Positions 3,182 to 63,999 of a stretch of DNA of 64,000 bases are shown piece after piece. Position numbers and translations under genes: made by a program. Position 1 is the stretch's first letter. Every line of letters starts with the position of its first letter. Under the pieces are notes generated by a model. It ran no database searches, was not told the origin of the DNA, and saw nothing but the letters and a program-made list of their open reading frames with translations. Location: the IMG/VR virus record IMGVR_UViG_3300023174_002543, positions 62,001 to 126,000 of that record; one strand, 5' to 3'.

Positions 3182-3212
3182 AAAAAAGAGCACTTCGGTG
3201 CTCTTTTTATTG
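3182..3212 (+). terminator. Intrinsic terminator after gp23, possibly bidirectional
   Basis: AAAAAGAGCAC-TTCG-GTGCTCTTTTT: 11-bp stem, UUCG tetraloop, A/T tracts on both sides. Confidence 0.9.
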
Positions 3213-3239
3213 GGCAATAATTACTATTACATAATAATG

Positions 3240-3246
3240 ATAAATA
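3240..3246 (+). promoter_or_regulatory. T4-type late promoter candidate ATAAATA
   Basis: Matches the T4 TATAAATA late -10 core; intergenic, after the terminator and 27 nt before the ATG at 3273. Confidence 0.7.
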
Positions 3247-3272
3247 CTCAATAGGATATATTCAAGGCAACC

Positions 3273-22714: not shown

Positions 22715-23964
22715 TGGCAACAAATTTAAAATCAGTTAAAGCATCTGCTCTTACTTCTGTTATAACTAGTGTTGCAAGCCCTGGTGTAAAGATAACTGGG
22801 TTAACATATCCAAGTGGTGCCAGTGCAGGAAATCCAGCAGGTGGCGAAACAATTACTGTTAATGGTAGTGGATTTAATACCGGTGCAATAGTGTATATTG
22901 ATACTACAAATTGCTCAACTACATATGTTAGTGCAACAAGTTTAACATTTACAAGTCCTGCTAAAAGCATAGCAAGTTATCATTTATTCGTTTACAATAC
23001 TGATGGTAGTTCAGGCATGTTGCCGGCGGGTATGATTTATAGCGCAATGCCAATATGGGTTACTAGTAGCGGATCATTGGGAATGGCTAGTATTGGATAT
23101 AGTTTTTCATCTACAGTGAGTGCTACCGGTGACGGTACAGTTACATACAGTTTAACTAGTGGTTCACTACCAACCGGCTTAAGTTTGAATACTAGTAGTG
23201 GTGTAATTTCAGGAACGACTGGTGGATCGGCATCAACCTTCAATTTTGTAATTTCTGCTACAGACAGTCAAAATCAAGTTACTACTAGAAGTTTTAGTAT
23301 AGAAACAAGTACTGGATCTGAATTACTCACCCCACCTAACAAAACTAAATTGTTAGGTTTACAATTTAATAGTAGTGGATTAACTGTTACTGGTTCTTGG
23401 ACAGTTACTACATATGGCTCATTGTCATATCAAACAACCGGTGGCGTAAGAAATACAGGCTATGCGACAGGATGGAGTACAACTAATTACCTAACAATAA
23501 ATCAAATAAATAATGCTACCGCCTCTACTATGAGAGATAAAACATACATGGCTTGGTATAAAGGCACACAAACTGCTGCTAAACCAACCGGAAATTATTC
23601 TCCGTCAGTTCCTATTTTTGCTGAACTAACTGGTTCAGTTTATTGGGGACTTGGCATAGATGACGGCAAAATAGCTGTATCTAATGGAGGTCAAAATAAA
23701 GGATCTACTTCAATTAATACCGGTAGTTGGTTTTTCTTAGCATGGGTAGTGAAATCAAATTCTGATGTTGACGCATATGTTAATGGTGTTAAAGAACTAA
23801 CAAATATTGCAGTAAACAATAGTTATCCGGGTACTAAGTATATAGGAAACGGATATAATTACGGGCCAATGGAAAATCCTACTGCATTAGACGCTATTCA
23901 AATAATAGATGGGGAGTTAACCGGTGCTGAGATACTTTCTATATATACACAAGGTACACAATGA
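22714..23964 (+). CDS. IPT/TIG + Ig-like + divergent LamG adhesin-like protein
   Basis: GGETITVNGSGF, YSLTSGSLPTGLSLNTSSGVISGT, WFFLAWVVK..YVNG; TAATG overlap with the upstream gene. Confidence 0.65.
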   Translation: MATNLKSVKASALTSVITSVASPGVKITGLTYPSGASAGNPAGGETITVNGSGFNTGAIVYIDTTNCSTTYVSATSLTFTSPAKSIASYHLFVYNTDGSSGMLPAGMIYSAMPIWVTSSGSLGMASIGYSFSSTVSATGDGTVTYSLTSGSLPTGLSLNTSSGVISGTTGGSASTFNFVISATDSQNQVTTRSFSIETSTGSELLTPPNKTKLLGLQFNSSGLTVTGSWTVTTYGSLSYQTTGGVRNTGYATGWSTTNYLTINQINNATASTMRDKTYMAWYKGTQTAAKPTGNYSPSVPIFAELTGSVYWGLGIDDGKIAVSNGGQNKGSTSINTGSWFFLAWVVKSNSDVDAYVNGVKELTNIAVNNSYPGTKYIGNGYNYGPMENPTALDAIQIIDGELTGAEILSIYTQGTQ

Positions 23965-45474: not shown

Positions 45475-48400
45475 ATGGCAAAGCACGTAATCGCGGAACA
45501 ATATTCATTTAGCCCGCTAACAAAAACACTTGTAATTAGTAATAGATACTTACGACAAGAACAATTAATGTTAATTACAAACACCACACGTAACGTGGTT
45601 ATGTACAACTTCAGTGATCCTACATTGGGTGCTACAGTTACTAACGTAATTAACCCATTAAACGCACAACCAACATGTACTATTGTATTAAATTATAATA
45701 CTGCGGCACATAGTTCTAGTGATAAAATCTCTATTTTAGTTGAAGAAACAAGTGAGACATTTATTCCCCAAGAAGTGTTAGTTGATCCAGTTAATAAATT
45801 ACGTGTTAGTCAACCCCAGTCATTGATTGATACTGACTTTGAATATAGCCCACAAAATACCAAATGGGAAACATTGAACCTGATTAATAATAGACCTTTT
45901 GCTTATATCAATTCGTTTCTCCCAATTACTATCAGTGATATTACTGCAACTAGTAATAGTAGAACCATAACAATTACTTCAAATGGACATGGGTTGACGG
46001 CGGGAACACCTGTTAACGTTCAAGATACATTGTTTGGTGGCGCCGACGGTACATATATGATTGATAGCGTTACCTCCAATACAATCGTCTATACTTGCAG
46101 ATATACATACACAAGTGCTACTGGTACAATTTTTAATGCTAATACAACTACTGCATATCAAGGATACGTTTACACTGGTTCAGCGATTGCAATGACAAGT
46201 GCAACATATTCAGGTAGTTTAATTACCGTAACCACATCTGTAGCGCATGGATTGGCAATTGGTAATGAAATTGCGTTGACTGGTGCTACTGCAAGTACAA
46301 ACGCACCAAACGGTAGTTGGACTGTGTGTACAGTATTAAGTCCAACAGTATTCGTCTTCAACTCAAATGCAACACCAACTGGTACATTGAGCGTTGGTGC
46401 AGCAAGTTTATATGGTCGACCATTAGGTTCTGTTAATCATAGAGCATTTGATGGTGGTGTAACATTTAGTACAAATGCCGCAAGTCATAATCAACAATTT
46501 ATTCGTCAAACACGTAGATATTTCCGTTATCAATCTGGTAAAGGCATGCAAATGTCTACTGGTACTATTTTAGAACCAAACATTACAGTAGACCAAATTA
46601 TTAGTTCAGGTACTACTGTTACCGTGTATACCAAGTACCCACATAACTTACAAATGGGCGCTGATGTAACTGTTACCGGTTGTAATGAAACTGCGTATAA
46701 TGGTACATTCAAAGTATTATATGTATTGGATACATATCGTATTCAATATACTGCATTGAGTACCCCAAGTGCAACTATTGCTAGTGGTAATTATGTTCTG
46801 TCAATTAGCGGATGGTATGGTGGTGCAACACGTGTTGGATTATTTGATAATCAAAATGGTGTATTCTTTGAATATGACGGACAAAATATATTTGCTGTAA
46901 AACGTGCAAGCACTTTTCAATTATCAGGATTAGTATCAGTAACTGCTGGTTCTAGTACTGTAACAAGCGCAGGTATTAATGGTATTAATACGGTTTTTAG
47001 CAAGCAATTAGTACCCGGTGATTATATTGTTATTAAGGGTATGAGTTATCGAATAGATACAATTGCAAGTGATACATCTATGACAATACTACCTGCGTAT
47101 CGTGGTTCAGTCAACGTAACAAATGCGGTGGTCACTAGAACAATAGATCAGAAAACAATATCAACTAATTGGAATATTGATAAATGTAATGGTACTGGTA
47201 TTAGTGGATTCAATTTAGATTTAACTAAAATGCAAATGTTCTATTTAGATTATAGTTGGTACGGCGCTGGCTTTATTCGTTGGGGCTTCCGTGGATCAAC
47301 CGGTGATATTGTTTACTGTCATAAACTACCAAACAATAACGTAAACTATGAAGCATATATGCGTTCTGGTAACTTACCTGCACGTTATGAAACAACCACA
47401 TACCCCGCAGTTACAGTGTTAACATACCCAATTGCACAAAGTGATACAACTATCACAGTTGCAAGTACTGCGGGATTTAACAGTGTTGGTAGTGTGGTAG
47501 TCAGGGGTAATAGCAATTACGAATATATTAACTATACTAGTATTTCTGCAACACAATTTATAGGTTGTACCCGTGGTCAAAGTGGAGGAACAATTACAGT
47601 TTCTAGTACAACATTAGGTAGTAATGTACTATTAACAACTAATACGGGTGGTATACAAATAGGTCAATATATATTTGGTACTGGAATTCAAGCTACTGCA
47701 TATGTTACTGGTTTTGTACCTAATACAAGTATTACAATGAGTATTTCGGCTACTGCAAATGGAACAAACGTGAGTTTATATTTTGCCCCAATGGGAGTAA
47801 CTGCAGCAAGTAGTGGTACATTTGCATTAACTAACGCAACAACATCTCAACCAAGTGGTACTAACCCAATCGCAGTTGAACAACATTCACCTTTATATTC
47901 AAGTACAATCAGTCATTGGGGTACTTCAGTAATTATGGATGGTCGTTTTGATAACGATAAATCATATGTGTTTACTAGAGGTATGGTTACTGCGCTACAA
48001 GTTGGCGGCAACACGACAAATGCCATTATGAGTATTCGTATTGCACCTAGTGTAAGTAACGGTGTCGTTGGTACAGCATTGGGCATTCGTGAAATTGTTA
48101 ACCGCATGCAATTAGTTTTACAACAACTGGACGTTTTCAGTAATGGTCAATTCTTGATGACTTGTATATTGAACGGAATTACAAACAGTGCAACACCAAA
48201 CTGGCAACCAGTTGGCGGTTCTAGTCTAGCACAATATGTTTTCCATACAACTGGTACAACAATTCTAGGTGGTGAAACGGTTTATGGTTTCTACTTGAAT
48301 AGTTCAGGTGCTACAGGTGGTTCTACTACTCAGCAAGATTTGAACTTAGTTCGTGACTTGGGTACAAGTATATTAAGCGGCGGTTCTTTACTTGCTAACA

Positions 48401-48510
48401 CTGGCATCTATCCAGACGGTCCAGACGTTATTACAATTGTAGCGCAGAACTTAGCAGGTAGTTCAGGTAATTTACAGGCTCGTTTATCTTGGACAGAGGC
48501 TCAGGCTTAA
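45475..48510 (+). CDS. Large virion structural protein with FCCH-like inserted modules
   Basis: 1011 aa; LMLITNTT.N..MYNFSDP, RVSQPQSLIDTDFEY, RQTRRYFRYQSGKG, FYLDYSWYGAG.IRWG; repeated T.TT..HGL..G..V..G..NG module. Confidence 0.6.
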   Translation: MAKHVIAEQYSFSPLTKTLVISNRYLRQEQLMLITNTTRNVVMYNFSDPTLGATVTNVINPLNAQPTCTIVLNYNTAAHSSSDKISILVEETSETFIPQEVLVDPVNKLRVSQPQSLIDTDFEYSPQNTKWETLNLINNRPFAYINSFLPITISDITATSNSRTITITSNGHGLTAGTPVNVQDTLFGGADGTYMIDSVTSNTIVYTCRYTYTSATGTIFNANTTTAYQGYVYTGSAIAMTSATYSGSLITVTTSVAHGLAIGNEIALTGATASTNAPNGSWTVCTVLSPTVFVFNSNATPTGTLSVGAASLYGRPLGSVNHRAFDGGVTFSTNAASHNQQFIRQTRRYFRYQSGKGMQMSTGTILEPNITVDQIISSGTTVTVYTKYPHNLQMGADVTVTGCNETAYNGTFKVLYVLDTYRIQYTALSTPSATIASGNYVLSISGWYGGATRVGLFDNQNGVFFEYDGQNIFAVKRASTFQLSGLVSVTAGSSTVTSAGINGINTVFSKQLVPGDYIVIKGMSYRIDTIASDTSMTILPAYRGSVNVTNAVVTRTIDQKTISTNWNIDKCNGTGISGFNLDLTKMQMFYLDYSWYGAGFIRWGFRGSTGDIVYCHKLPNNNVNYEAYMRSGNLPARYETTTYPAVTVLTYPIAQSDTTITVASTAGFNSVGSVVVRGNSNYEYINYTSISATQFIGCTRGQSGGTITVSSTTLGSNVLLTTNTGGIQIGQYIFGTGIQATAYVTGFVPNTSITMSISATANGTNVSLYFAPMGVTAASSGTFALTNATTSQPSGTNPIAVEQHSPLYSSTISHWGTSVIMDGRFDNDKSYVFTRGMVTALQVGGNTTNAIMSIRIAPSVSNGVVGTALGIREIVNRMQLVLQQLDVFSNGQFLMTCILNGITNSATPNWQPVGGSSLAQYVFHTTGTTILGGETVYGFYLNSSGATGGSTTQQDLNLVRDLGTSILSGGSLLANTGIYPDGPDVITIVAQNLAGSSGNLQARLSWTEAQA

Positions 48511-49133: not shown

Positions 49134-49550
49134 ATGAACAAAAGTTATTTAACAGAAGTGTTTGGCGCACAAGAAGGATTTGTATACGAATACACAGGAA
49201 CTGTTCCTGAGGGAATTAATCCTGAATCCGCCGAAATGTCGGAACATGTAACACTAGATTTCTTAGCAGGGCACGGTGATAATTTAATTGCTACTAGAGT
49301 AGTTCAGTTTCCATATCAACATAATAAAATTTTGCTTTATGCAAAAACAGATATGGATATGAATACATCAAGTGAATTTGCATTAATATCACATTTAGTC
49401 CCGGACGTAATAGTTGCCCCAGTAGAAGTTCAACAACCAACTGAAACTTCTGAGACAACTGAAACTGCTGAGACAACTGAAACTGCTGAGACAACTGAAA
49501 CTGCTGAGACAACTGAACCTTCAACAGATTCAAACGAACAAGGACAATAA
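49134..49550 (+). CDS. Acidic hypothetical protein with a TETAET repeat tail
   Basis: 138-aa ORF, E/T-rich C-terminus. Confidence 0.55.
   Translation: MNKSYLTEVFGAQEGFVYEYTGTVPEGINPESAEMSEHVTLDFLAGHGDNLIATRVVQFPYQHNKILLYAKTDMDMNTSSEFALISHLVPDVIVAPVEVQQPTETSETTETAETTETAETTETAETTEPSTDSNEQGQ
49440..49517 (+). repeat. 18-bp coding tandem repeat, 4.3 copies
   Basis: ACTGAAACT(T/G)CTGAGACA x4 plus ACTGAA. Confidence 0.9.
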
Positions 49551-50397: not shown

Positions 50398-51918
50398 ATG
50401 TTAGTATCTTTCAATCCAATGATTAACACAGGCGCAACAGTTGATGCTGCCTACATGAATTTTTTACGTTGTGTAAAAGCAATTTGTACTGCGGCAGCAG
50501 GTACAAGTAGTTTGACTGTAAATCCAATACTTGCTATTAACGGTACTAGTGATAGTACTATGAATTGTATTACTAGAATTTATGCTAATGCAGAAGCAGG
50601 CGGCTGGATAGAAAGTACTAGCAGTAACGTAATTCAACCGGGTACTGCATTTACTGCTATTGCAAGTGCTAGTATATTCCTATATAAATTTGATGCATAC
50701 AATGGTTCTGGTAAAGGCAGCATACCTTATAACAAATTATGTTTTCACACTAATACTGATGGCGGTAGTGACTTTACAGGTATGAATCGTACTATACCGC
50801 CTAGAAGTCAGTTTGCAAGTTATCCACAAGTTATGATGACATTTGGTAGTAGCACAACTACTGATTGGACTGATACTAGATTTGTACCTACTGGAACGGT
50901 AGCGGGTACTAATTATGTGAATTATGGTTATGCAACAGCAGGTGCTAGTGGATCTGGATATCAAAATCAAAGTATGACATGTCATGGTTTTATGAGCACT
51001 AGTGCAAGCTATTGGGGATTAAACTCAATGAACCCGTTTGCGTTAAACAGAACTTTCTTTTTGTCAGTTACTGCCAGCTATTGTATATTGTGGGAACAAT
51101 CTAGTCTTAACAGTTATACAACAGCACCGTTCTATGCAAACGATTTACAATTAAATAGCAATGCCGGTGCACTCACCGGTCAATCACCTACTTATAGTAA
51201 TAGTAGTTATACTAGCCCATATTATGGTTGTCTATATTACGGTGGACTGCGTGAAACACAAGCATGGGAAAATGCTATTTCAACTAATCCACCTTGGGTA
51301 GTAATGAATCTTTCATTTCACCGTTATCCCACACCACCTAACAGTACAAGTAGTGTGATGAATGGTACTCCAAATTGGATGGGTGCATATATGTGTACTA
51401 TCAATGATAGTGGTGTTGTAAACACCACGCCCACTACATATGTATCTGGTAATAGAAATGGTGCCTATGATTTTGATTTACCTTCAGGACACAACACAAG
51501 TTATAACTGTTATATTAACTTATATGGCGGCGCACAAAATCATAACGGAACTAATCCATATTCAGGACTACTAAGCCCATTTGTAACTAGAAGTTGGACA
51601 GGTAATCCTAGTTATGCAAGTGTTTCAGGGGGTGTAGCTAACACAAATCAATTTTATATGCCAACAGTTGATCCAGTAACTGGTACTGCTGTTCCTAGTG
51701 CATATCCTATTGTTGCACGTAGACTTACATCAGGTTCTTGGACACCCGGTGGTGCTATTCGTGGATTATATAGAAGTTTAAGTATGCCAGTCGCAACTAT
51801 GAGAAACTATTTTGCCCCTGGTCAAACATTCAATATTTATAACTCCGTTACTGCAACAACAGATACTTACTTACCAGTTATTTGGGGTGAAGATATGTTC
51901 TTGGTTCGTTACGCATAA
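50398..51918 (+). CDS. Hypothetical, probable virion protein
   Basis: 506 aa, T/S/G/Y-rich; weak terminal similarity to 49552. Confidence 0.5.
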   Translation: MLVSFNPMINTGATVDAAYMNFLRCVKAICTAAAGTSSLTVNPILAINGTSDSTMNCITRIYANAEAGGWIESTSSNVIQPGTAFTAIASASIFLYKFDAYNGSGKGSIPYNKLCFHTNTDGGSDFTGMNRTIPPRSQFASYPQVMMTFGSSTTTDWTDTRFVPTGTVAGTNYVNYGYATAGASGSGYQNQSMTCHGFMSTSASYWGLNSMNPFALNRTFFLSVTASYCILWEQSSLNSYTTAPFYANDLQLNSNAGALTGQSPTYSNSSYTSPYYGCLYYGGLRETQAWENAISTNPPWVVMNLSFHRYPTPPNSTSSVMNGTPNWMGAYMCTINDSGVVNTTPTTYVSGNRNGAYDFDLPSGHNTSYNCYINLYGGAQNHNGTNPYSGLLSPFVTRSWTGNPSYASVSGGVANTNQFYMPTVDPVTGTAVPSAYPIVARRLTSGSWTPGGAIRGLYRSLSMPVATMRNYFAPGQTFNIYNSVTATTDTYLPVIWGEDMFLVRYA

Positions 51919-51927: not shown

Positions 51928-51948
51928 TAACTTAATTTTAGGGGTAAC

Positions 51949-54900
51949 ATGGCAGACTCAAGCCTATCTAGTTTAGCACTATCCACATATAGCACAAATA
52001 CTTATTACAGTACATGGTTTAGTGGCACAGGATATTTAACTATACCAGCCGGATCTCAACTTGAATTTGGTGCTAATAATTTTACTATTGAGTTATGGTG
52101 GTACCCCACTTCAACAGTAAGACAAGCAATATATCATGGTAGTTTTGGTACAGATTGGTCTGTTGGTATTGACTATAATTCAGTCAGTACGAATAAAATT
52201 GGAATTTGGGCTAGTAGTAACGGTACTAGTTGGAATTTAATTAACAGTGACGCTGCTGGAAATGGTATAGGTACAATAACACCAACACAAAATGCATGGA
52301 ATCATATAGCGTATGTACGTAATGGTACAACATGGTCATTATATGTTAATGGTGTTGTAAGTGTAAATATTACTGGTTTGTCAGGTACGATTGTAAGTAG
52401 ATCCGCATCTACTAAAGCAATTGGTTGTTGGTGGTCAACAGGTGCTATGAGCCAAATACAAGGTTACGTAAGTAATTTTAGAATTCTTAATGGTACAGCA
52501 TTATATACCACAGCCTTTGATCCTCCCATCCAACAATTAACTGCAATTGCAAATACTGTTTTATTAACTTGTCAAAATATTACATCGATAGATAATAGTA
52601 CTGCTAATGGCGGAGTTGGTTTTGCTATTACCAGAAATAGCACTACCATCGGTGTTAGGCAGTTTACCCCACCATTATTAGTAACCAGTTCAGCAACATT
52701 AACTCCTACTTATAATAGCGGCACATTAACTTATACATTTAGTGCACCTACTAACATCTCTGTGATAAGAGTAATACCAACTGCAAATGATGCTGCAAAT
52801 GCAAGTATTAAATTCAACGGCAATGTTACATTAACTAGCGGTCAACCAACGGTAGCAAGTGCTGCACCATATTTGAATAGTGGCTATAGTGCAAACTTTG
52901 TTAGTGGTTTATTACAAACCGCACATAATACCAATCTTAACATAGCTGGATATGCTTGGACTATTGAGTTTTGGACATATATTACTACAAGTAGCCTTAC
53001 ATGTATATTTTTTACAAAAAAAGCAAGCGGCGCAAGTACCGGTATAGCATATCAAGGTGGATTGCAATCAGGGGTACCGAGTTTTAGCCAGGCAGGTAGC
53101 ACTAGTTTTGTCAACACCGGCATACGTATGCCATTAAATGCATGGACGCATGTTGTGTACGTATATGACGGTGGTGTTGCATCCACTAGTACGGGAAACA
53201 TATCCGTATACTTTAATGGTGAAAAGGTGGTTAACTTTGTTGTTAATACCTTTGTAGACAACACAGAACCATTGACTATTGGTGGTAGTAGAGGTTTAAC
53301 AGAATGGACAATTGGCAACATCAGTAACTTCAGAATGGTTAAGGGTTATCAATTATATAATGGTAATTTTACACCACCAACACAACCTTATGGTTTAACT
53401 CAACCTGCAAGCGCAGGTGTTCCTGCAATTATTAGTTCTGATATTAATAGCGGGTTTTTTAGTGGTACTAATGCATATCTTACTGTTCCTGGTACCAATA
53501 TAACTAATATTTTTACAGGTGATTTTACAATTGAAGCATGGTTATATCCAACTGCTGCCTTTGGCGCTTCTTGGGTTACGGCTGATGGTGGATTTTCAGA
53601 AATCCCAGTAATGATTTGTAACGCATCACCAACTGCGTTAAATTATTATTGGGCATTTGGTCCTAGTAGTACAGGTACTGTTAGATTTATTACTAGTTCT
53701 ATATATTTTAATACGGTAACTTCAACTGCAACTTGTACTGTTAATGCTTGGAATCATCTAGCACTTGTTAAAATTGGTACTACATATAAAATTTATGTTA
53801 ATGGCATAGGAACTTCAGGTACTACTATAACTACTTCGCCTGGTACAGCCTTTTCAGATGCTGTGGGTATTTCTATTGGTGCAAACAATAATAAATATGT
53901 CACTGGTTATATTAGTAATGCAAGAATAGTTAAAGGCACTGCCGTATATACTGAAAATTTCAGACCTTCAATCACACCATTAACTGCTATTTCAAATACA
54001 AGTTTATTAGTATTACAAAATAGATTAACCAGTGATGCAAGTACAAATAACTTAACACTAACAAACACTAACGTTACTGTAAATACTTCTATAACTCCAT
54101 TTGTTCTACCAGTTACAAGTTTAGTACAACCAAACGGTAGTAGCGTATTTTTTAACGGTAGCACATCACTAAGCGGTAGTGCTGACTTTACTGCAACAGG
54201 TAATTTTACAATTGAATGCTGGATTTATCCTACAGTATCTACTGAATGTGATATTTTAAAAATAGGTAATGAAGCAACGGGTCGTATAGTATTTGGTACA
54301 GGTTTGCCTGCAGCCGGTAATTTGTTTTATAACATTTATGGTGGAAGTAGCATTGTGATTGCTACAGGTATATCGACCAACACATGGCAACATGTCGCTA
54401 TTGTAAGAATCGGCACAACACTTACAGGTTATATCAATGGTGTTGCTGGAACTCCTGTAACAGGTGTGTCTGGAACATTAGGTAACACTAGTGGATTTAG
54501 TACAATGACTACTGGTACTGGATACATTACTAATTTGCGTTATGTTGTTGGCACTGCCTTATATACAAGTAACTTTAACGTATATAATTCACCACTAGTT
54601 ACAATAACAAATACAAAATTATTAATATTACAATCAAGTGTCACTACTGATAGTAGTACAAATAATTATACATTAACACCTACTTCACCTGCACCAACAT
54701 TATCAACTACAATCACCCCGTTTATAACTTACGGTGCAGCCAGTACACAATTCTTAAGCACTGCACTTGCATATCAAACTGTGGCAAATCCATATAGTCT
54801 TGCACTATCAATGGGTCAAGGACATAATAATTTTACTGCTGAAGCATGGGTATATTTAACCGCTAGTCCTGGTGGAGCACCAGGTGCTTTTATCATGCAA

Positions 54901-57900
54901 AAGGGTACAGGAGCAACAGGTGGCGTAGAGTGGGCTTTTAGTGTATACAATACTGGTATTTATTTTACATATGTTTCAGGTATCCCAACAGGCACTACTA
55001 CAAGCAATTCAATTACTGCAAATATTGTCACTGGTAGATGGATGCATTTGGCATTTACAAAAGTTGGAACTAGTTTGCATTTTTGGCTTAATGGAACTTA
55101 TGTTTATACACTTAATGGTGTGAACAATTTATATTATACTGCACAATATAATAGTTATTTTACTGTTGCAAATAATCAAGCCGCTAGTGGCGCTGCATTC
55201 CCAGGATTCATTAGTAACGCACGTGTAGTATACGGTAAAGCAATATATACTACCAACTATGATGCACCGTTTATACCAAGCACTACACCATTAACTGTTA
55301 CACAAACTGCAACCTCATCAATTGCTAGTATTGATAATGCTAATTCATATAATATAGTTAACGGTAATAGTGTATTCTTTAATGGTACTAATGACTTCTT
55401 AACATTCCCTGAGCCAGCAAACTTATTTAATAGTGCATTATTTAACGGAACGAATCAATTTTTAATTCTCAACTCTGCATCACCGGGCCCGGCATTTGCT
55501 TTTGGTACGGGTGATTTTACTATTGAATTTTATTTTAATGGACCACCACAAACTAACAGGTTCTTTTATGATAATAGACCTAGCTCACCTAACGGATATC
55601 CACATGTAACTACAGGACTTACTACCAGCGTACTACGTTGGGGACCTACCAATCTACAAGGATCAATAATTATAGGTGATAATAAATGGCACCATTGTGC
55701 AGTAACAAGAGAGTCAGGTACAATAAAACTTTGGATAGATGGAGTATTAGACACAAGCGGCAGTGATACAACAAATTATAGTACCAATTATGGCGTCTAT
55801 ATAGCTTTTGATTCTGTTCCTTCAACTTGGCTAGCAGGCTTTTTAAGTAATTATCGTATTATAAAAGGTACTGCATTATACACAACAAATTTCACACCAA
55901 GTACAACACCATTAACAAGAACAAGCCAAGGCGCTATAGCAAGTCAGGTTTCGTTATTGACTTTGCAAAATCCTACAATCGTAGACAATTCAACTAATGC
56001 ATTTACTATTACAAACAGCGGAACGCCGTCAACACCAACATCACTAAATCACCCATTCGCACTATACGTAGGTGATGGTACAAACGTAACAATTGAAGCG
56101 TGGATTATGTTAGGTTCGGTACCAACTGCTCCGAGAGGTTTTATTATTAATAATAGTGCAACCACTACAGGTTATTTTGGTATTGCGGTCGAATCAGGTA
56201 CAACAAATGCAGCACGTTCTATATCAGTATGGAGTGACAGTAACGCTACATCAGTACTAGCATCAACCACATTAGTTCCATTATATACATGGACACATGT
56301 TGCAGTAATGTTTGCTAATAATTTAATAACAGTTTATATCAACGGTGTACGTGATGCAACTACTGTTGCTAAAACTACTATTTGGCAAGCCGCGACATTG
56401 GGTACAGTGTATATCGGCAGACAGGCAAGTACAGCTGCACAATATTTTCCTGGATATATAACTAATTTAAGAGTAGTATATGGAACCGCTCTATATTCTA
56501 TAAATACAGTCAAGTTCACTGTACCCACAGGCCCATTAACTGCAATCACAAATACAGTATTCTTGGGATTACAGTCTAGCGTTACATTTGATGCCAGTAC
56601 TAACAATGCAACAATAACAAAAGGGTCAGGCGCAACTGGTTTAATACTAGCACCATTAACAAGTCCATTCCAAACTTATTTACCAAGTGTTACCAATGGA
56701 TATAGTATTGGGCTTGGATTTCTTGGTTCAGGAGCTAATGATTACATTAGCTATATCTTTGGTAATGGAGTTGCTGGCATTCAAATGACAGGTGATTTTA
56801 CTGTTGAAACTTGGGTGTTCTTACCACAATATCCTAGCAATAGAATTGCTATTCTCAATAGTCAAAACACAGCCAATGACGCTGGCGCCGGATGGGATAT
56901 TCTATCTACTGGTCAAGTTTCATTTAACTCGGGTGGTAACACGTGGCTTAGTAGTACTACTTTTATTGGAATTAACACTTGGTATCATCTAGCACTTACT
57001 AGACAAAATTCTACTGTTAGATTGTGGATTAATGGTGTGCAGGATGTCACAACTGGTACAACTACAGTTTCATTTGCTCAACCTAGCACTAACGTAATAT
57101 ATATAGGACGTAACGCATCAGGCTTAGTTGGAAACGCTTATTTTAGCAATTATAGATGGTTTATTGGTACATGTTTATATACCGGTACTTTTACCCCAAG
57201 TCTAACACCATACGCAACAACAACTAATGCAAATGCAAATGTATCGGCAGTAAATGGTATAACATCATATCCCAATATAGGAAGTTATGGTCTTACTTAT
57301 AGCGGTAGTATAAGTATGACTAACGCTGGTCATGCAGTTACTAGTACTACTGTAGGAACTTATACTGGTTATTGGGATTTGGCTACATATGATTTTACTG
57401 TTGAAGCATGGTTTAATAACACACTAATGACAGGATTTGGTAGTATTACTGCAATCGTAATTGCGGGTAATGGTGCAAATGCATCAGACAATGCGTGGTC
57501 ATTATCTACGACAAAATCTAGTTTAACTCAAGCAACACTAATTTTCTCTAGTGGTGGCTCTGGTCAAGCGCAACAACTAACACACACAACCCCAACACTT
57601 AATATTAACTCAAATCAATGGTATCATGTTGCAGTAGTTCGTATAGGAATCACACATACAATATATCTAAATGGTTTACCGGTTAGTGTATTCATATTGT
57701 CTAGCGGACAGTTGATGGGCGCTACAGCAATGCCTTCAACTTATGCAAAAATTGCGATTGGTTCTAATTTGTCAAATGGAACAGTAACACAACCCTTCAA
57801 CGGTTATATTAGTAACGTTCGTGCAATAAAGGGATATGGTGTGTATACTGGTCAATTCTTACCAAGTACAAGTCCATTAACAAACACACAAAGTGCAGTT

Positions 57901-60900
57901 AACAATAATAATGCAATTACAGGCACAGTTACCAGTTTACTAGCATTGCAAAATTCAACTACCTTAGATGCAAGTTCAAATAATTTAACATTAACTGCTA
58001 CCGGTAGCCCAACAGTAAGTTCAACAGTTGTTCCTTTTCTACCTGGTGTAAATGGTTATAGCACTTACTTTAATGGTACTACTGATTATATTCAGATGCC
58101 CATCCCAACATCAGCCGCTACTGCTGCAAATGGGCAGTTTACGCTTGAAACATGGATATATTGTACTAATATCTTAACTAATCCTTTTATTGTAAGTTCT
58201 TGGTATTTCTCAACTCCGTTGTCAAGTTCATGGCAATTGCAATTGTTTAATGGTTATTTACAATTTGGTTATGGAATTGGTAGTGTTACTAATACTATAA
58301 CCGGTACTACTAGAACAGTTTCATCTAGTACATGGACTCATGTTGCAGTAACAAGAGATTCAAACAATCTTATTACTTTCTATGTGAATGGTATAGCAGA
58401 TGCCACTACAACAACTGTAGTAGGTACATTTAATACCAACGTTAATCAAGGTGTAAGAATAGGATCAGGTGTTGGTTCTGGTCAGGCTTGGTTATTGGGA
58501 TTTCAAGGATATATCAGTAACTTAAGATTTGTCAGAGGTATAACTGTATACACCGGTGCATTCACACCACAAACAACACCATTAACTGTAACACAAAGTT
58601 CAGGTACTAATATTAGTGCAATTTCTGCTGCCGCATCAAATGCATATAGTCTTGCATTTGTTGGCAATAACGGTGCAGCATTAGCCAACGTTAATATTCC
58701 GCAATATCTTAGCGTATCAGGTGGGTCGTTATTCAACTTTGGTACAGGTAATTATACAATTGAATGCTGGGCATATGCAAATACTATTAGTGATGGTAGA
58801 ACTATATTCAATATGTATTCAAGTTTTTTTGGAACCTTTATCAGATATGCAAGCACAACCGGATGGCAACTATATTATAATGCCGGTGGAAGTTCAACTA
58901 CCTATACTTTTAACAGTACCAATAGTGGACTTGGTTTTTGGGTTCATCATGCACTAGTTAGGTCTAGTGGTACACTATATTGGTATATTAATGGAGTGAA
59001 TGTGTTCAGTGTAGCAGAGTCTACGAATTATGTATACACTACATTAGATATCGGATATTATAATTCACCTACATACAATTGGAGCGGATTCATTAGTAAC
59101 TTTAGAATTGTTAAAGGAACTGCAATCTATACTAGTGGTACAGCATCATTTACCGTACCTACTTCCCCGTTGACTGCGGTTGCAGGCACATTGATATTAA
59201 CTGGACAAAATGCAACTATCGTTGATAACGGTACTGCAAACTTTGGTGCTAGCTTTACTATTTTTAATAATAACGCAGTTACAACCACTGCACTTATTTC
59301 TCCGTTCATAAGTGGAAATACACAATTATTATTGTTGCAATCTCCCACATTATTTACATCAATGACTGATGCTGGACCTAGTAACTTTATGGGAACAGTT
59401 ACAGGATTACCAGTAGTTAATACTACTAGTATGACATTTTCACCGTTCTTGAATGCTAACGGACGTAGTGTATTCTTTACAGGAAGCAGTCAATATATAA
59501 CTGCACCAAGCAACAGTGTATTTACATTTGGTACAGATGATTTTACTATTGAGGGTTGGATATATTTAGTAAATGGTACTACAAGTGGCACATTATATGA
59601 TGCCAGAACAGGTTTAACTACCGTTAGCGCACAAATTTACATTCAATCAAACATTGTTAATTATGCAGTGGCAGGTGTTAGTGTCATTAATTCTAGTACA
59701 ACAATACAACCATTAAGTACTGCAACATGGTATCACATCGCAGTGGTTCGTATTTCAAATGTAACAAGATTATATGTAAACGGGTTGCAAGCAGGTAATA
59801 GTTATGTAGATAATAATAACTATGTTATCGGTGCACCGTATATTGGTACCGGCTTCGGTTCTAGCAATCCATTGAATGGATATATTAGTAATCTACGTGT
59901 AGTTGATGGCACCGGAGTATATTCAAATAGTTTTGTTGTTCCAATTACACCATTAACAAGTACACAAAGTAGTAGTTCAAGTATTATAGCATTGAATAAT
60001 GCAACACCAGTTTTAGGTAATAGTGTTTATTTTAACGGCGCTAGTGATTATATGAAAGTTTCTGGTGTAGTGTCTTTCATGAATACAGGCGACTTTACAA
60101 TTGAAACATATTACTATCCAACTAGTTTTGCAGCAGTCACTACATTATTTGGTCAATATACAGCCGCAACAACAGCATTGGGCTATTGGAACGTTCAAAT
60201 AACTACTGCAGGTATTATAACGGTATACTATAATGGTTCTACTAACTTTCCTGCAAGTACTGCAATTTTTGTTAATGAATGGGTACATATTGCACTAGTA
60301 AGAATTAGCGGTACTATTACATTATATGTTAACGGGGTAAGTTACGGAACAGCGAGTTTTGCAACTCAGTTTGGTTTAACAAGTATCTCATCACCGTTAT
60401 TTATTGGTGCAACACAGTTAAGTGGACCAGTGCAATATGCGTTAGGTTATATGAGTAACTTCCGTATTGTTAAAGGTTTAGGTGTTTATACAGGAGCATT
60501 TACAGTACCAACTAGCCCATTAGGTAGTACACAAAGTTCAGGTACTAATATCGCTGCAATAACCGGTACAAGTACAAGTTTACTTCTATTCCAAAATTCA
60601 CCTTATACCGACAATAGTACATTCAATAATCCTATAACAGGTTTTGGTAATCCATTATATTCACCAGTATTCAGTCCATCATTCTTTAGTTATCCAACTC
60701 CGGCAAACGGTAATAGTGGTTACTTCAATGGTTCAACTTCATATCTATCACTAACACAACCTAGCAATGCAAGTACAGGTGATTTTACAATTGAATTATG
60801 GGCTTATCCTACATCACTTACCGCTATAGGTTATTTAATGAGCACAAGCACTGCTGCATCTACTGCTTCTACTACTAACGGATATGTAGCATTAAACGGT

Positions 60901-63900
60901 ACAACTCAATATCTAACTGTACCTTCTAATAACGGATTTGTTTTTGGTACAGGAGATTTCACAATTGAATGTTGGGTACTAACTAGTCAGGCGGCTACGA
61001 ACGGTGCATCAACAACGGATAGATTCATATTTGGTGCTATTGGAAATACTCCTTCATGGTCTATATATCTTCAAAACGGTGCTACATTAATACCTAATTT
61101 TTATTCACCAACCGGATCTGTGGCTAGCTCAATATCTGTTTCAACGGGTGTTTGGACTCATATAGCGGTCGTAAGATATAGTGGAAACATGTATATATAT
61201 GTTAACGGTGCATTGGGAGGTACTGTAGCAAATAATACTAACTATACTGCTAGTGGAACACAATATATAGGTCGTGCTGATGATGCTGCTAATAAATTCT
61301 TCAACGCAAATATTTCTAACTTAAGAGTTGTAAAAGGTACAGCAGTTTATACTGGTGCATTCTCAGTACCAACATCACCGTTAACCGCTATACAACTTTC
61401 AGGATTGAACATATCGGCCATTAGTGCAGGTGTTGCAGGAACTAGTGGCACACAATTATTAGCATTACAGTCTGCTCTTACTACTGATGCTAGTGTGAAT
61501 GCACTTACATTAACTGCCATAGCTACTCCAACATTTACTGCCTCAGGTGGTCCAATCACCGGTAGCCCTCTTAGCGCAGGTTCTTTCCATCTATGGATAG
61601 CCACTAACGGTACAGTAAATTTGGCTGTAGATCAGGCTGCTGTAAGTATTGTTAGTGTATTCCCTTCAGTGGCTAAACAAAATACATGGACACATGTTGC
61701 GATTACACGAACCAACGGCGTAGTATATTTATTTGTCAATGGTTATAGAGTGGCTTCATCACTAGCTAAAACAACATTGTGGGGTGGTACTGATACATTA
61801 AACATTGGTCGTTATCAGCCAAGTGGAAATCAATACTTTGTAGGATATATCACTAACGTGAGATTTGTATATGGAACGTCAGGAATATACACAAGTAATC
61901 CATTAACTCCACCTTACACTACACCATTGACTGCTGTTACAGGTACAACATTGTTATTGTTACAATCAACACTAACTAAAGATAATAGTGCTAATAACGT
62001 AACAGTTACAAATAATAATGTGATATTATCAACGTATACCAATCCGTATACAACAATGAAGTTGCCATTCTTATTAAGTGCTCAAAATGGATATGGTATC
62101 AATGCCGGCACCGTAGTAAGAGATAATAGTATATTTAACACTTCATTACAAAGTACCAGCACTAGTTATGTAACATATATGGCTGCAGTAAGTCCTTTTG
62201 GAGTGACCCCCACTCTACTAGTTGGTCAATCAGCCATGCAACGTGATGAAAGTATCAACAGCCTAGTTCCACAAACAATTACCACAACAGCCACAATAAT
62301 GCCTTATGTAACACCATTCAGTGGTAATGCAGTTGCATTTAACGGCAGTACAAGTTATATTACTGGTACTAACTTATACAACAGTTTGGGCGGGGACTTC
62401 ACAATTGAATTCTTTATGATGGCAGGTCCACAAACTGCTACAGTCGGTGGATTACTGTTAGGCAGAAACATAAGCTGGTCTACTACAAATAATAATTATT
62501 ATATCATGTGTAGTTCACCCGGTGGAGTTGGGAAAAACTCATTACAAACTATACAAATTTATAACCCGCTTATTAGTATAACTTCACCTGTGTATTTAGG
62601 ATTAACCTCGGTTTGTGATAGCAAATGGCATCATATTGCTATTGTAAGAATTAATGGTATTGTAAAAATATACATCGATGGAGTATTAGATACAAGTCCG
62701 TTTAGTAGCTTTGCGAATACGGGTATTTGGGACTATAGCAATTATACTATTGGTAGTAATCCAAATGACGCTGGGTCAACAGTAGCCCAATTAGCATACA
62801 ACGGTATGTTAAGTAACTTGCGTATTATTAATGGTACCGGTATTTACACAGGCACGTTCACCCCTCCTACAAATAACTTAACAACATCACAATCTAGTAG
62901 AACAAATGTTGTTCAATATACATCAACAACACCAAGTTCAACAGGTTATAGTTTGCAATTTAATTCAGCGACTGGTAGTTATCTAACTACAACCTATTCC
63001 CCTGTACTAAGTTTAGGAACAAATGACTATACGATTGAGTTCTGGCACTTCTTATCAGGTAAATCAGCAGCAAATCAACCTTGTTTGTTCAGTAATGCTA
63101 ATAGTTCTAGTGCTGGCGTTTTAAATATGTATGCCGGACATGCTAGTGCCAATGTACTAAAATATCAACTTGCATTTAACACTCAGTCGGTAATAGCTAC
63201 TTATATAACCATGCAAAGTGTATCAAATATCATCTATGGCAAGTGGACACATATTGCATTGGTAAGAAGATCAGGGGTTGTGTATCTATATATTAATGGT
63301 ACACTTGATTCTACTAGCGGTTTAGGTAATTATTCTGTATACAGTTCTCAATGGTACATAGGTAATGATGTGACAAATTCAGCTTTAGGATATATTTCTG
63401 GCTTCATCAGCAACTTCCGTGTCACAAACGGTCTAGCAGTTTATACCGGTAACTTTACAGTACCAACTAGTGCATTAACAACAACACAAAGTTCAGGTAC
63501 AAACATTGCTGCAATAACCAATACAAGTCTGGCTAATGGTGGTGCAATATCTATTGTAGCCAGTGGTTCACAATATATAAATACCACCATGGTATTAACA
63601 ACTGCAACCACTAACATGACAGTTGAGGCTTGGGTAAATTTCACTTTATTCCCAACGTCAAATACTTGGATAGGTGGCACTGCAACTATTTTTAGTACAA
63701 GCGGTAATAGTTATTCAAGCGGTATACATTTTGTATTAGGTTCAACTAATATATATGTTGTAATAACAAATACTGTATACGGTGGTTATGCACACAACAT
63801 GGTTGCTGGAACTTGGTATCATCTTGCGTATGTTATAAATAACGGGGTCGTTACATTCTTTATAAATGGTATTTCTGTGGGTAGTATATCAGGTATCCCT

Positions 63901-63999
63901 GTTACTTTTGGAGCACCTAGTTATTCTGTAATAGGTGCATCTGATACCAGCGGATCATATGGTATCGGTAGTATTGGTGGCGGTAGCGTTGGGTACATT
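51949..63999 (+). CDS. Giant multi-LamG/ConA-like adhesin-like protein, at least 4017 aa, truncated by the window end
   Basis: ATG 51949 (MADSSLSSLALSTY); manual translation of many segments gives 18 xTxE.W cores in the same frame up to ...GSVGYI. The track lists no + ORF here, as expected if there is no in-frame stop inside the window. Confidence 0.9.
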   Translation, partial: MADSSLSSLALSTYSTNTYYSTWFSGTGYLTIPAGSQLEFGANNFTIELWWYPTSTVRQAIYHGSFGTDWSVGIDYNSVSTNKIGIWASSNGTSWNLINSDAAGNGIGTITPTQNAWNHIAYVRNGTTWSLYVNGVVSVNITGLSGTIVSRSASTKAIGCWWSTGAMSQIQGYVSNFRILNGTALYTTAFDPPIQQLTAIANTVLLTCQNITSIDNSTANGGVGFAITRNSTTIGVRQFTPPLLVTSSATLTPTYNSGTLTYTFSAPTNISVIRVIPTANDAANASIKFNGNVTLTSGQPTVASAAPYLNSGYSANFVSGLLQTAHNTNLNIAGYAWTIEFWTYITTSSLTCIFFTKKASGASTGIAYQGGLQSGVPSFSQAGSTSFVNTGIRMPLNAWTHVVYVYDGGVASTSTGNISVYFNGEKVVNFVVNTFVDNTEPLTIGGSRGLTEWTIGNISNFRMVKGYQLYNGNFTPPTQPYGLTQPASAGVPAIISSDINSGFFSGTNAYLTVPGTNITNIFTGDFTIEAWLYPTAAFGASWVTADGGFSEIPVMICNASPTALNYYWAFGPSSTGTVRFITSSIYFNTVTSTATCTVNAWNHLALVKIGTTYKIYVNGIGTSGTTITTSPGTAFSDAVGISIGANNNKYVTGYISNARIVKGTAVYTENFRPSITPLTAISNTSLLVLQNRLTSDASTNNLTLTNTNVTVNTSITPFVLPVTSLVQPNGSSVFFNGSTSLSGSADFTATGNFTIECWIYPTVSTECDILKIGNEATGRIVFGTGLPAAGNLFYNIYGGSSIVIATGISTNTWQHVAIVRIGTTLTGYINGVAGTPVTGVSGTLGNTSGFSTMTTGTGYITNLRYVVGTALYTSNFNVYNSPLVTITNTKLLILQSSVTTDSSTNNYTLTPTSPAPTLSTTITPFITYGAASTQFLSTALAYQTVANPYSLALSMGQGHNNFTAEAWVYLTASPGGAPGAFIMQKGTGATGGVEWAFSVYNTGIYFTYVSGIPTGTTTSNSITANIVTGRWMHLAFTKVGTSLHFWLNGTYVYTLNGVNNLYYTAQYNSYFTVANNQAASGAAFPGFISNARVVYGKAIYTTNYDAPFIPSTTPLTVTQTATSSIASIDNANSYNIVNGNSVFFNGTNDFLTFPEPANLFNSALFNGTNQFLILNSASPGPAFAFGTGDFTIEFYFNGPPQTNRFFYDNRPSSPNGYPHVTTGLTTSVLRWGPTNLQGSIIIGDNKWHHCAVTRESGTIKLWIDGVLDTSGSDTTNYSTNYGVYIAFDSVPSTWLAGFLSNYRIIKGTALYTTNFTPSTTPLTRTSQGAIASQVSLLTLQNPTIVDNSTNAFTITNSGTPSTPTSLNHPFALYVGDGTNVTIEAWIMLGSVPTAPRGFIINNSATTTGYFGIAVESGTTNAARSISVWSDSNATSVLASTTLVPLYTWTHVAVMFANNLITVYINGVRDATTVAKTTIWQAATLGTVYIGRQASTAAQYFPGYITNLRVVYGTALYSINTVKFTVPTGPLTAITNTVFLGLQSSVTFDASTNNATITKGSGATGLILAPLTSPFQTYLPSVTNGYSIGLGFLGSGANDYISYIFGNGVAGIQMTGDFTVETWVFLPQYPSNRIAILNSQNTANDAGAGWDILSTGQVSFNSGGNTWLSSTTFIGINTWYHLALTRQNSTVRLWINGVQDVTTGTTTVSFAQPSTNVIYIGRNASGLVGNAYFSNYRWFIGTCLYTGTFTPSLTPYATTTNANANVSAVNGITSYPNIGSYGLTYSGSISMTNAGHAVTSTTVGTYTGYWDLATYDFTVEAWFNNTLMTGFGSITAIVIAGNGANASDNAWSLSTTKSSLTQATLIFSSGGSGQAQQLTHTTPTLNINSNQWYHVAVVRIGITHTIYLNGLPVSVFILSSGQLMGATAMPSTYAKIAIGSNLSNGTVTQPFNGYISNVRAIKGYGVYTGQFLPSTSPLTNTQSAVNNNNAITGTVTSLLALQNSTTLDASSNNLTLTATGSPTVSSTVVPFLPGVNGYSTYFNGTTDYIQMPIPTSAATAANGQFTLETWIYCTNILTNPFIVSSWYFSTPLSSSWQLQLFNGYLQFGYGIGSVTNTITGTTRTVSSSTWTHVAVTRDSNNLITFYVNGIADATTTTVVGTFNTNVNQGVRIGSGVGSGQAWLLGFQGYISNLRFVRGITVYTGAFTPQTTPLTVTQSSGTNISAISAAASNAYSLAFVGNNGAALANVNIPQYLSVSGGSLFNFGTGNYTIECWAYANTISDGRTIFNMYSSFFGTFIRYASTTGWQLYYNAGGSSTTYTFNSTNSGLGFWVHHALVRSSGTLYWYINGVNVFSVAESTNYVYTTLDIGYYNSPTYNWSGFISNFRIVKGTAIYTSGTASFTVPTSPLTAVAGTLILTGQNATIVDNGTANFGASFTIFNNNAVTTTALISPFISGNTQLLLLQSPTLFTSMTDAGPSNFMGTVTGLPVVNTTSMTFSPFLNANGRSVFFTGSSQYITAPSNSVFTFGTDDFTIEGWIYLVNGTTSGTLYDARTGLTTVSAQIYIQSNIVNYAVAGVSVINSSTTIQPLSTATWYHIAVVRISNVTRLYVNGLQAGNSYVDNNNYVIGAPYIGTGFGSSNPLNGYISNLRVVDGTGVYSNSFVVPITPLTSTQSSSSSIIALNNATPVLGNSVYFNGASDYMKVSGVVSFMNTGDFTIETYYYPTSFAAVTTLFGQYTAATTALGYWNVQITTAGIITVYYNGSTNFPASTAIFVNEWVHIALVRISGTITLYVNGVSYGTASFATQFGLTSISSPLFIGATQLSGPVQYALGYMSNFRIVKGLGVYTGAFTVPTSPLGSTQSSGTNIAAITGTSTSLLLFQNSPYTDNSTFNNPITGFGNPLYSPVFSPSFFSYPTPANGNSGYFNGSTSYLSLTQPSNASTGDFTIELWAYPTSLTAIGYLMSTSTAASTASTTNGYVALNGTTQYLTVPSNNGFVFGTGDFTIECWVLTSQAATNGASTTDRFIFGAIGNTPSWSIYLQNGATLIPNFYSPTGSVASSISVSTGVWTHIAVVRYSGNMYIYVNGALGGTVANNTNYTASGTQYIGRADDAANKFFNANISNLRVVKGTAVYTGAFSVPTSPLTAIQLSGLNISAISAGVAGTSGTQLLALQSALTTDASVNALTLTAIATPTFTASGGPITGSPLSAGSFHLWIATNGTVNLAVDQAAVSIVSVFPSVAKQNTWTHVAITRTNGVVYLFVNGYRVASSLAKTTLWGGTDTLNIGRYQPSGNQYFVGYITNVRFVYGTSGIYTSNPLTPPYTTPLTAVTGTTLLLLQSTLTKDNSANNVTVTNNNVILSTYTNPYTTMKLPFLLSAQNGYGINAGTVVRDNSIFNTSLQSTSTSYVTYMAAVSPFGVTPTLLVGQSAMQRDESINSLVPQTITTTATIMPYVTPFSGNAVAFNGSTSYITGTNLYNSLGGDFTIEFFMMAGPQTATVGGLLLGRNISWSTTNNNYYIMCSSPGGVGKNSLQTIQIYNPLISITSPVYLGLTSVCDSKWHHIAIVRINGIVKIYIDGVLDTSPFSSFANTGIWDYSNYTIGSNPNDAGSTVAQLAYNGMLSNLRIINGTGIYTGTFTPPTNNLTTSQSSRTNVVQYTSTTPSSTGYSLQFNSATGSYLTTTYSPVLSLGTNDYTIEFWHFLSGKSAANQPCLFSNANSSSAGVLNMYAGHASANVLKYQLAFNTQSVIATYITMQSVSNIIYGKWTHIALVRRSGVVYLYINGTLDSTSGLGNYSVYSSQWYIGNDVTNSALGYISGFISNFRVTNGLAVYTGNFTVPTSALTTTQSSGTNIAAITNTSLANGGAISIVASGSQYINTTMVLTTATTNMTVEAWVNFTLFPTSNTWIGGTATIFSTSGNSYSSGIHFVLGSTNIYVVITNTVYGGYAHNMVAGTWYHLAYVINNGVVTFFINGISVGSISGIPVTFGAPSYSVIGASDTSGSYGIGSIGGGSVGYI

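Follow-up and report, generated by a model that had tools for sequence, protein, structure and literature searches.

A giant LamG-array gene with an expandable domain insert, probably encoding a host-adhesion fibre of a freshwater jumbo myovirus

Laminin G3 domains have been noted on the tail fibres and other virion components of jumbo phages (PMC7824862). Phage structural proteins with LamG domains in tandem are a known, annotated and uncharacterised kind; examples close to the present case are the LamG proteins of T4-like cyanophages (PHROG families 701, 3545, 8510, 13163, 1469 and 18802), which carry tandem Laminin_G_3 domains in a structural module and can be very long, the phrog_701 profile running to 6,136 positions. 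Fibres encoded by a single giant gene are documented as well, prominently gp85 of Synechococcus phage S-CREM2, a long tail fibre of 4,971 amino acids (aa) whose presence in virions is backed by 286 unique peptides (PMC10665884). Outside phages, the same jelly-roll fold, again in tandem arrays, is found in the laminin LG, neurexin LNS and pentraxin proteins. The branched fibres of Rak2/phiKp24-type jumbo phages use many separate depolymerase tailspikes. Hyperbranched fibres have been linked to a broad capsule range, and jumbo phages are also known to bear hair-like appendages (PMC13282480). Here, we describe a giant gene that begins in the last 12 kb of a stretch of 64,000 nucleotides (nt; hereafter the window), corresponding to positions 62001-126000 of the only contig (C1) of IMG/VR virus record IMGVR_UViG_3300023174_002543 (367,104 bp; CheckV completeness about 100%). 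The gene encodes 8,153 aa with 34 LamG domains and is an extreme, very large example of this class of arrays.

The comparison with each of these systems is instructive in what is and is not shared. The giant protein and the cyanophage LamG proteins have the tandem array and the structural setting in common, but their likeness is confined to the LamG repeats (about 28-38% identity). S-CREM2 gp85 is, as the giant probably is too, a single-gene giant fibre in a T4-related phage, and proves that fibres of several thousand residues are feasible; as a verified homologue it was rejected, having no LamG domains and carrying a C-terminal Peptidase_S74 intramolecular chaperone. With Rak2/phiKp24-type phages the giant's genome shares a related myovirus backbone and long blocks of many fibre genes; unlike theirs, the solution here is one chain with 34 non-catalytic lectin-like domains. 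The eukaryotic LamG modules differ in sequence (10-22% identity), in their EGF spacers, which the giant lacks, and in the phage context of the latter. Finally, the Hc-N subdomain of clostridial neurotoxins (PF07953) has a LamG-like fold, gave weak structural matches and appears among "faint" precomputed Pfam matches in relatives of the giant. This likeness was rejected as a relationship, the resemblance being at the level of fold only: the giant has no translocation, protease or Hc-C domain and is not related to the toxins.

The gene lies on the + strand in frame 1, where the preliminary description, made from the window alone, had claimed an unannotated open reading frame (ORF) of at least 4,017 aa. 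The open frame is real: in an ORF listing that allowed open ends, the frame runs from the ATG at 51949 to 63999 through 4,017 codons with no stop and an open 3' end, and the translation has no in-frame stop between 51949 and 64000. In the full contig the frame carries on for a further 12,410 nt beyond the window edge (L001:1-12411; end C1:138410), so that the whole gene spans C1 113949-138410, measures 24.5 kb and occupies 6.7% of the genome. The claimed absence of annotation would most simply be explained by the window edge, which cuts through the gene. The ATG at 51949 is the first available start, because the nearest in-frame stop on its 5' side is at 51928; a Shine-Dalgarno-like AGGGG, read from the sequence, stands 4 nt before it (51940-51944, +), and the N-terminus (MADSSLSSLALSTYS...) is kept in the orthologues P0004, P0006 and P0012. 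The predicted protein has a mass of 858 kDa and an isoelectric point of 6.6; threonine, serine, glycine and asparagine make up 45% of its residues and charged residues just 5%.

In principle, such an ORF might be an artefact, either a chimera in which the assembly collapsed or expanded repeats, or a pseudogene in decay that is open by chance, and misassembly is indeed common in repetitive genes. We nevertheless give this explanation practically no weight. At this base composition (A 0.32, T 0.31) the chance that any one codon is a stop is 0.069, which puts the probability of 8,153 codons remaining open by chance at about 1e-253; none of the other five frames stays open for more than 128 aa. 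Third codon positions are strongly skewed (T 0.46, G 0.075), matching coding expectation. No tandem repeats are detectable at the DNA level in the gene, the paralogous domains are only about 30% identical, and metagenome contigs of two independent studies match 58000-63465 without any mismatch or gap, an identity that extends across 5.5 kb and includes the junctions of the nested domain described below. Given the absent tandem repeats and the identical independent contigs, we rejected recent DNA-level repeat expansion or assembly collapse. Apparent joints with sides of 21-45 nt in the comparison of contigs and reads proved to be cross-matches between paralogous repeats. Moreover, orthologues of 5,133-6,996 aa are intact. 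The giant ORF is accordingly a genuine, intact and independently assembled gene.

The domain content of the protein was established with Pfam and with a hidden Markov model (HMM) built from its own repeats. Laminin_G_3 (PF13385; gathering cut-off 27.6 bits) matches 18 stretches in the first 4,017 codons (51949-63999; 768 bits, E = 2.3e-234) and 16 more in the second half beyond the window (P0002; 784 bits). Single domain matches score 38.8-88.4 bits, all above the cut-off; the N-terminal piece of the split domain D15 scores 19.6 bits and passes only together with its neighbours in the frame. Weaker Laminin_G_1/2 matches fall on the same domains. The 18 LamG/ConA-like cores located by the preliminary description are thereby borne out in number and in place, their coordinates corresponding to the FT[IV]E.W strand that domains D01-D18 have in common: for 12 of them a strict regular expression gives the place to within 0-6 nt, while the other six can be derived from the domain boundaries. 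With the 12.4-kb continuation of the frame included, the own-repeat HMM delimits 34 complete LamG domains of about 170-200 aa each, which account for 75% of the residues.

The layout opens with a leader (aa 1-15) and a first LamG domain, D01 (aa 16-203; 51994-52557, +), which belongs to a conserved N-terminal module together with a weak cadherin-like beta-sandwich (aa ~247-302; 52687-52854, +); D01 and this module align with aa 16-291 of the mini-orthologue P0012. The cadherin-like family PF12733 (cut-off 24.2 bits) stays below its cut-off in the giant, at 21.2 bits, and passes it in P0012, at 26.3 bits. D02-D34 follow at aa 309-7542, of which D02-D18, with their spacer units, occupy 52873-63999 (+), D18 being cut at the window edge; the last 611 aa (aa 7543-8153) form a non-LamG C-terminal region. 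The spacer unit is about 40 aa long (LLxLQxSxxxDxSxNxxTLT..G.P......PF), stands in 1-4 copies between many domains and occurs about 31 times in total. It resembles the usual N-terminal hairpin of Laminin_G_3 proteins (LLLHFDG...DSS...H.VT..G). The strong divergence among the cores that had been remarked upon is equally real: the median pairwise identity of the domains is 30% (range 20-72%), which marks the paralogues as old. The sole close set consists of D12 (aa 2502-2675; 59452-59973, +), D24, D26, D31 and D34, with mutual identities of 57-72%. Positions invariant across the LamG domains (E, W.H.A, NG, N.R and Y) are fold-core motifs. A Pfam search of both halves found no hydrolase domain in the protein, and likewise no Peptidase_S74 or other chaperone domain.

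Structure comparison confirms the LamG/ConA fold proposed in the preliminary description, a beta-sandwich jelly roll of LamG type. The top matches of the AlphaFold model of aa 2866-3340 in a Foldseek search of the PDB were laminin alpha2 LG4-5, the neurexin-1 LNS domain, two pentraxins (Limulus and PTX3) and perlecan LG3, with probability 1.00, and also agrin LG. About 390 columns are covered by alignments with solved pairs of LG domains; the 40-aa spacer unit is not resolved in the model. In a viral structure library the best matches were ConA-like proteins of uncultured Caudovirales, together with Synechococcus phage models named "structural protein", "LamG-like jellyroll" and "baseplate wedge initiator". 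Sequence searches of the PDB with aa 2480-3340 and with a profile of the C-terminal region gave no matches.

Two of the cores in the window, at 60781 and 60955, are separated by only 58 aa. Both are genuine: the former belongs to the N-terminal piece of the split domain D15 (aa 2918-2979; 60700-60885, +), which carries the FTIE core strand, and the latter to an inserted domain, D14 (aa 2974-3151; 60868-61401, +). After D14 and one spacer unit, D15 resumes without N-terminal strands of its own (aa ~3190-3333; 61516-61947, +). The orthologous domain of P0004, A10, is contiguous and aligns with the giant at aa 2893-2975 and then from aa ~3190 onward, with 54% identity from the HLWI strand on, and D14 has no counterpart in P0004; therefore, about 215 aa (D14 and the spacer) were inserted into a loop of D15. 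In the AlphaFold model of aa 2866-3340 the predicted local distance difference test (pLDDT) is 77-95 for the D14 core, and both pieces of D15 are beta-strands, at 55-84; the orthologue alignment suggests that these two pieces pack against each other. Contigs of two independent studies span both D14/D15 junctions without a difference.

The C-terminal 611 aa begin with a stalk of about seven more spacer units and end in a terminal domain of about 220 aa, which has three repeats of the DVANSNLAE type and an invariant end (...PTYSYTDGV.ITAANVQ...NTQIWYQT). The region is very rare, matching only 10 clusters among 1.84 billion representatives, and the matched clusters share the N-terminal leader. 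In the stalk and the C-terminal domain Pfam found nothing credible at E <= 1, a feature search of the ESM Atlas with the last 237 aa gave no usable match, and 50,697 phage records, among which the phage's own may have been lacking, held no match to the ORF by megablast or to the C-terminal region by tblastn. Modelled as a homotrimer, the assembly of canonical fibres (three copies, 13-row alignment), the last 237 aa reached a pLDDT of about 25. The stalk has a duplicate within the array, where four spacer units at aa ~5508-5684 are 42% identical to aa 7543-7730 at the start of the stalk (in L001, about 4470-5000 versus 10576-11140). Such runs may have been left behind when domains were deleted, or may represent part of the stalk that was copied inward.

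Long relatives were sought in a word-indexed search limited to proteins of 2,209-7,030 aa, which found 209 LamG arrays at E <= 1e-20. The nearest clade has 42-48% identity and lengths of 5,421-6,996 aa, P0017 (5,133 aa) is further off at 35%, and all are annotated as "hypothetical"; at 8,153 aa the giant is the longest that we encountered, although the search band ended at 7,030 aa. P0004 (6,010 aa, 25 LamG domains) and P0006 (5,843 aa, 24) are full-length giants with the same leader and C-terminal domain and with collinear, shorter arrays. P0013 and P0014 (6,995 and 6,996 aa), P0015 (6,550 aa) and P0016 (5,928 aa) are linked to the giant by their overall similarity of 42-48% only. None of these metagenomic orthologues (P0004, P0006 and P0013-P0016) is described in the literature searched, all being entered as "hypothetical protein".

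Alignment of the giant with P0004 is collinear and yields 23 orthologous domain pairs (22 reciprocal best hits and the collinear pair G21/A16) with 39-84% identity; D13, D29 and D32 are 77-84% conserved. The two arrays differ by the presence or absence of whole domains, namely D04, D10-12, D14, D25, D30 and D33-34; missing from P0004 are D10-12, D14, D25, D30 and D33-34. Across 32 orthologous domain pairs the mean identity is 60%, as against 30% for paralogues, and orthologues retain 40-56% conservation even in columns that paralogues leave nearly free to vary (10-15%). Each array position has thus retained an identity of its own. Position-specific identity is compatible with position-specific roles and is by itself no proof of different ligands.

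The most telling relative is also the smallest. In the relative L004, the slot of the giant gene is filled by P0012, a protein of 549 aa with one LamG domain, between genes in the same order on both sides (upstream ORFs of 1,012, 189, 95, 276 and 477 aa; downstream a 144-aa ORF, nrdA, nrdB and glutaredoxin). P0012 aligns with the giant at aa 14-296 (33% identity) and at aa 7932-8152 (45%), and thus amounts to the giant's two ends joined directly. The downstream synteny (145-aa ORF, nrdA) is present in L003, L005 and L006 as well. The same slot holds proteins of 549 aa (1 LamG domain), 5,843 and 6,010 aa (24 and 25) and 8,153 aa (34). In the relatives L003-L006, from which flank and slot-end identities were taken, the flanking genes are 72-96% identical (nrdA 88-96%, the 1,011-aa protein 86%, a 141-aa ORF 94%), whereas the ends of the slot gene are just 32-45% identical and the best-matching array domains average 46-58%. 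By these measures the slot gene evolves much faster than the phage backbone, which is how host-recognition genes behave. That the window holds only half of the gene, that its non-LamG ends are conserved and that the array is an expandable insert between them are points the preliminary description did not have.

The genomic setting is that of a virion gene. In the window, all substantial ORFs read in the + direction with little space between them; the structural block opens with the major head protein (1961-3157; phrog_138), contains many large ORFs with fibre, tail and structural PHROG matches, and closes with the giant gene. After it come a 145-aa ORF and nrdA, the giant gene being bordered by the nucleotide-metabolism genes nrdA and nrdB. 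Among its neighbours, a 1,011-aa virion structural protein (45475-48510, +; phrog_5838) served as a synteny anchor and is about 45% identical to proteins of S-PM2 and S-RSM4 (86% in L004). LamG domains recur in the block according to Pfam, six of them in a second array protein of 1,604 aa (31680-36494, +), where they follow an N-terminus of about 330 aa without LamG, and one in a 298-aa protein (13108-14004, +); three further single-LamG ORFs lie on the minus strand of the genome, at 194181, 342601 and 344086. Just before the giant gene stand two ORFs without a family match, of 138 aa (49134-49550, +) and 506 aa (50398-51918, +). Between relatives their identity falls to 41% and 56% (the latter in L004), far below the 72-94% of the genes around them, and they may change together with the fibre as its partner, adaptor, assembly or chaperone proteins. 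Directly downstream, the 145-aa ORF (L001:12451-12888, +) also has no family match, and its position is kept in all relatives with 72-92% identity. A Pfam search at E <= 1 on the neighbouring ORFs of 189, 138, 277, 506 and 145 aa returned nothing credible. Elsewhere in the block, ORFs of 1,696, 758 and 416 aa (14047-19137, 10234-12510 and 22714-23964, all +) have no PHROG match.

The phage itself is best understood from its whole genome. Its head protein is closest to those of Vibrio phage 2.275.O (349 kb; 68%) and the PA5oct group (287 kb; 67%), its nrdA is closest to Xanthomonas phages (61%), psbA (PF00124) has no match in the 367-kb genome, and the sequence is present in lake-water and freshwater metagenomes. 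The evidence from head protein, nrdA, psbA and metagenomes therefore points to a freshwater jumbo myovirus that belongs to the T4 superfamily and carries some cyanophage-like fibre genes. Identity as a cyanophage, which the 45% match in the fibre block would suggest, was rejected for the phage as a whole, given the missing psbA and a head protein nearest to 2.275.O and PA5oct. Its relationships are mosaic in this respect, the best cultured relatives of the 1,011-aa protein being T4-like marine cyanophages. No reverse transcriptase (PF00078) was found in the 367-kb genome, which at a CheckV completeness of about 100% led us to reject diversification by a diversity-generating retroelement. A second giant ORF of 5,727 aa lies outside the window on the minus strand (C1:21233-38416; L008), has no PF13385 match and matches phrog_10938, a "virion structural protein" (E = 2.8e-269); the two giant genes together take up about 11% of the genome. 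A further feature is an island of about 15 kb with 33 tRNA genes (C1:155234-170028), among them an isoleucine tRNA with a TAT anticodon. In L004, a PAAR-motif protein (16754-17035) and a 1,143-aa ORF lie a few genes past the slot, after nrdB and glutaredoxin.

A diverged LamG array between conserved ends, encoded in a fast-evolving slot of a virion block, most likely makes a very long host-adhesion fibre, and we consider it probable that the giant gene encodes a virion adhesion and host-recognition fibre with an expandable LamG array in a freshwater jumbo myovirus. The adhesin proposed in the preliminary description was thus a reasonable functional guess; what the genomic context adds is that the protein would be a phage virion or fibre protein and not a cellular adhesin. 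We infer its location on the virion, the anchoring of one end, the binding of glycans and its oligomeric state. In the proposed mechanism, the leader, one LamG domain and the cadherin-like sandwich constitute the N-terminal end and the domain of about 220 aa after the stalk the C-terminal end, with the 33 further LamG jelly-roll domains as an expandable insert between these conserved ends. One end would dock on the virion, and the chain would project as a long fibre resembling beads on a string, on the order of 100-150 nm in length if each LamG domain contributes about 4 nm. The lectin-like domains, the distal end or both may make low-affinity multivalent contacts with host surface polysaccharide in the course of reversible adsorption. 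Array length changes as whole domains are gained or lost, in one case through the insertion of a domain within another.

Several observations weigh against this interpretation. The giant's PHROG matches are to families annotated as "virion structural protein" or "baseplate wedge subunit", but they run through the generic LamG repeats. For phrog_13163, which bears a gp7-type label, 17 repeated stretches were reported and the best of them covers profile positions 509-719 of 976, a LamG-type repeat; judged from the profile range of this best stretch, there was no sign of a gp7 core. The PHROG labels themselves stem from cyanophage proteomics and orthology transfer (PMC3037559). The phage is uncultivated, and the presence of the giant in its virion is read from the labels of PHROG and BFVD relatives. 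No ligand-binding residues are conserved across the domains, the invariant residues all being fold-core, and no hypervariable column block or loop stands out in the LamG fold between orthologues; the data thus do not demonstrate diversifying selection at a binding site. Moreover, no recognisable family was found for the C-terminal domain (by Pfam at E <= 1, PDB profile search, tblastn and ESM Atlas), and an AlphaFold2 model of the C-terminal 611 aa, built on a 10-sequence alignment, was unusable, with a pLDDT of 31; because the domain could be neither modelled nor assigned to a family, its role as tip or anchor is a guess.

The main rival takes up just these points and holds that the LamG domains are beads that set the length of a passive shaft, the conserved terminal domain doing all the specific binding; the protein would then still be a fibre, though no lectin of multiple specificities. 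That P0012 keeps the two ends and only one LamG domain suggests that the ends carry the indispensable function, and an array free to vary from 1 to 34 domains, conserved only in its fold core and lacking a hypervariable loop, is what might be expected of a shaft. Interchangeable spacers, however, would not be expected to keep their identity position by position between phages (60%, against 30% for paralogues), and a mere spacer could be built from a cheaper repeat, for instance of Ig-like or coiled-coil type. LamG, LNS and pentraxin folds, furthermore, typically bind ligands. Taken together, we regard a purely passive shaft as possible and clearly less probable than an adhesion fibre.

Other roles are less likely still. 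The protein might decorate the capsid or tail as a "hair" that tethers the virion to non-host particles, mucus or biofilm matrix, and jumbo phages have been described with fibres on the capsid (PTm1) and hairs on the tail (Erwinia phage Y3; PMC13282480); the gene, far downstream of the head gene yet in the same block, has no baseplate assignment from the data. We think this improbable, since host-range determinants more typically show such fast change of sequence and length relative to a 90%-identical backbone, and the surrounding block is rich in tail-fibre-like matches. Even less credence is due to a non-virion protein made during infection and shown on or released from the host cell, for instance to block superinfection or as a decoy. 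The indirect placement in the virion and the adjoining nrdA and nrdB would accommodate such a protein, but inspection by eye found neither a signal peptide nor a membrane anchor at the N-terminus, the gene shares its strand and tight spacing with the structural block, and its PHROG and BFVD relatives are structural proteins. An assembly artefact, considered above, ranks below both.

More speculatively, the adhesion fibre can be read as an accordion: a minimal two-ended fibre of 549 aa would have been inflated stepwise, through insertions of whole domains and in one case of a LamG into another LamG, to 24, 25 and 34 position-specific lectin domains, giving a single-chain glycan reader of multiple specificities by which host range or attachment to particles is set in lakes. 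The giant would then be one of the largest phage-encoded proteins and a solution unlike the branched fibres with many tailspikes of related jumbo phages. We put this extended reading forward tentatively and hold it, as a whole, to be rather doubtful. In the literature we searched, nothing specific was found on LamG fibres or on a "largest phage protein". We also did not find descriptions of the very rare C-terminal module, of a series from 549 to 8,153 aa at one slot, or of a nested LamG domain, and these features leave the expected class of mechanism unchanged.

The gene nevertheless illustrates that phage genomes are able to afford a single gene of 24.5 kb, and its nested D14 adds a clean case of domain-in-domain insertion within the LamG fold. 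Truncation at the window edge had concealed half of it, and the family stands wholly as "hypothetical" in public databases. If the proposed reading is true, the slot offers a natural series of 1, 24, 25 and 34 lectin-like modules in otherwise near-identical backbones, which would be suited to the study of how repeat number and domain identity relate to adsorption, reach and host range in freshwater.

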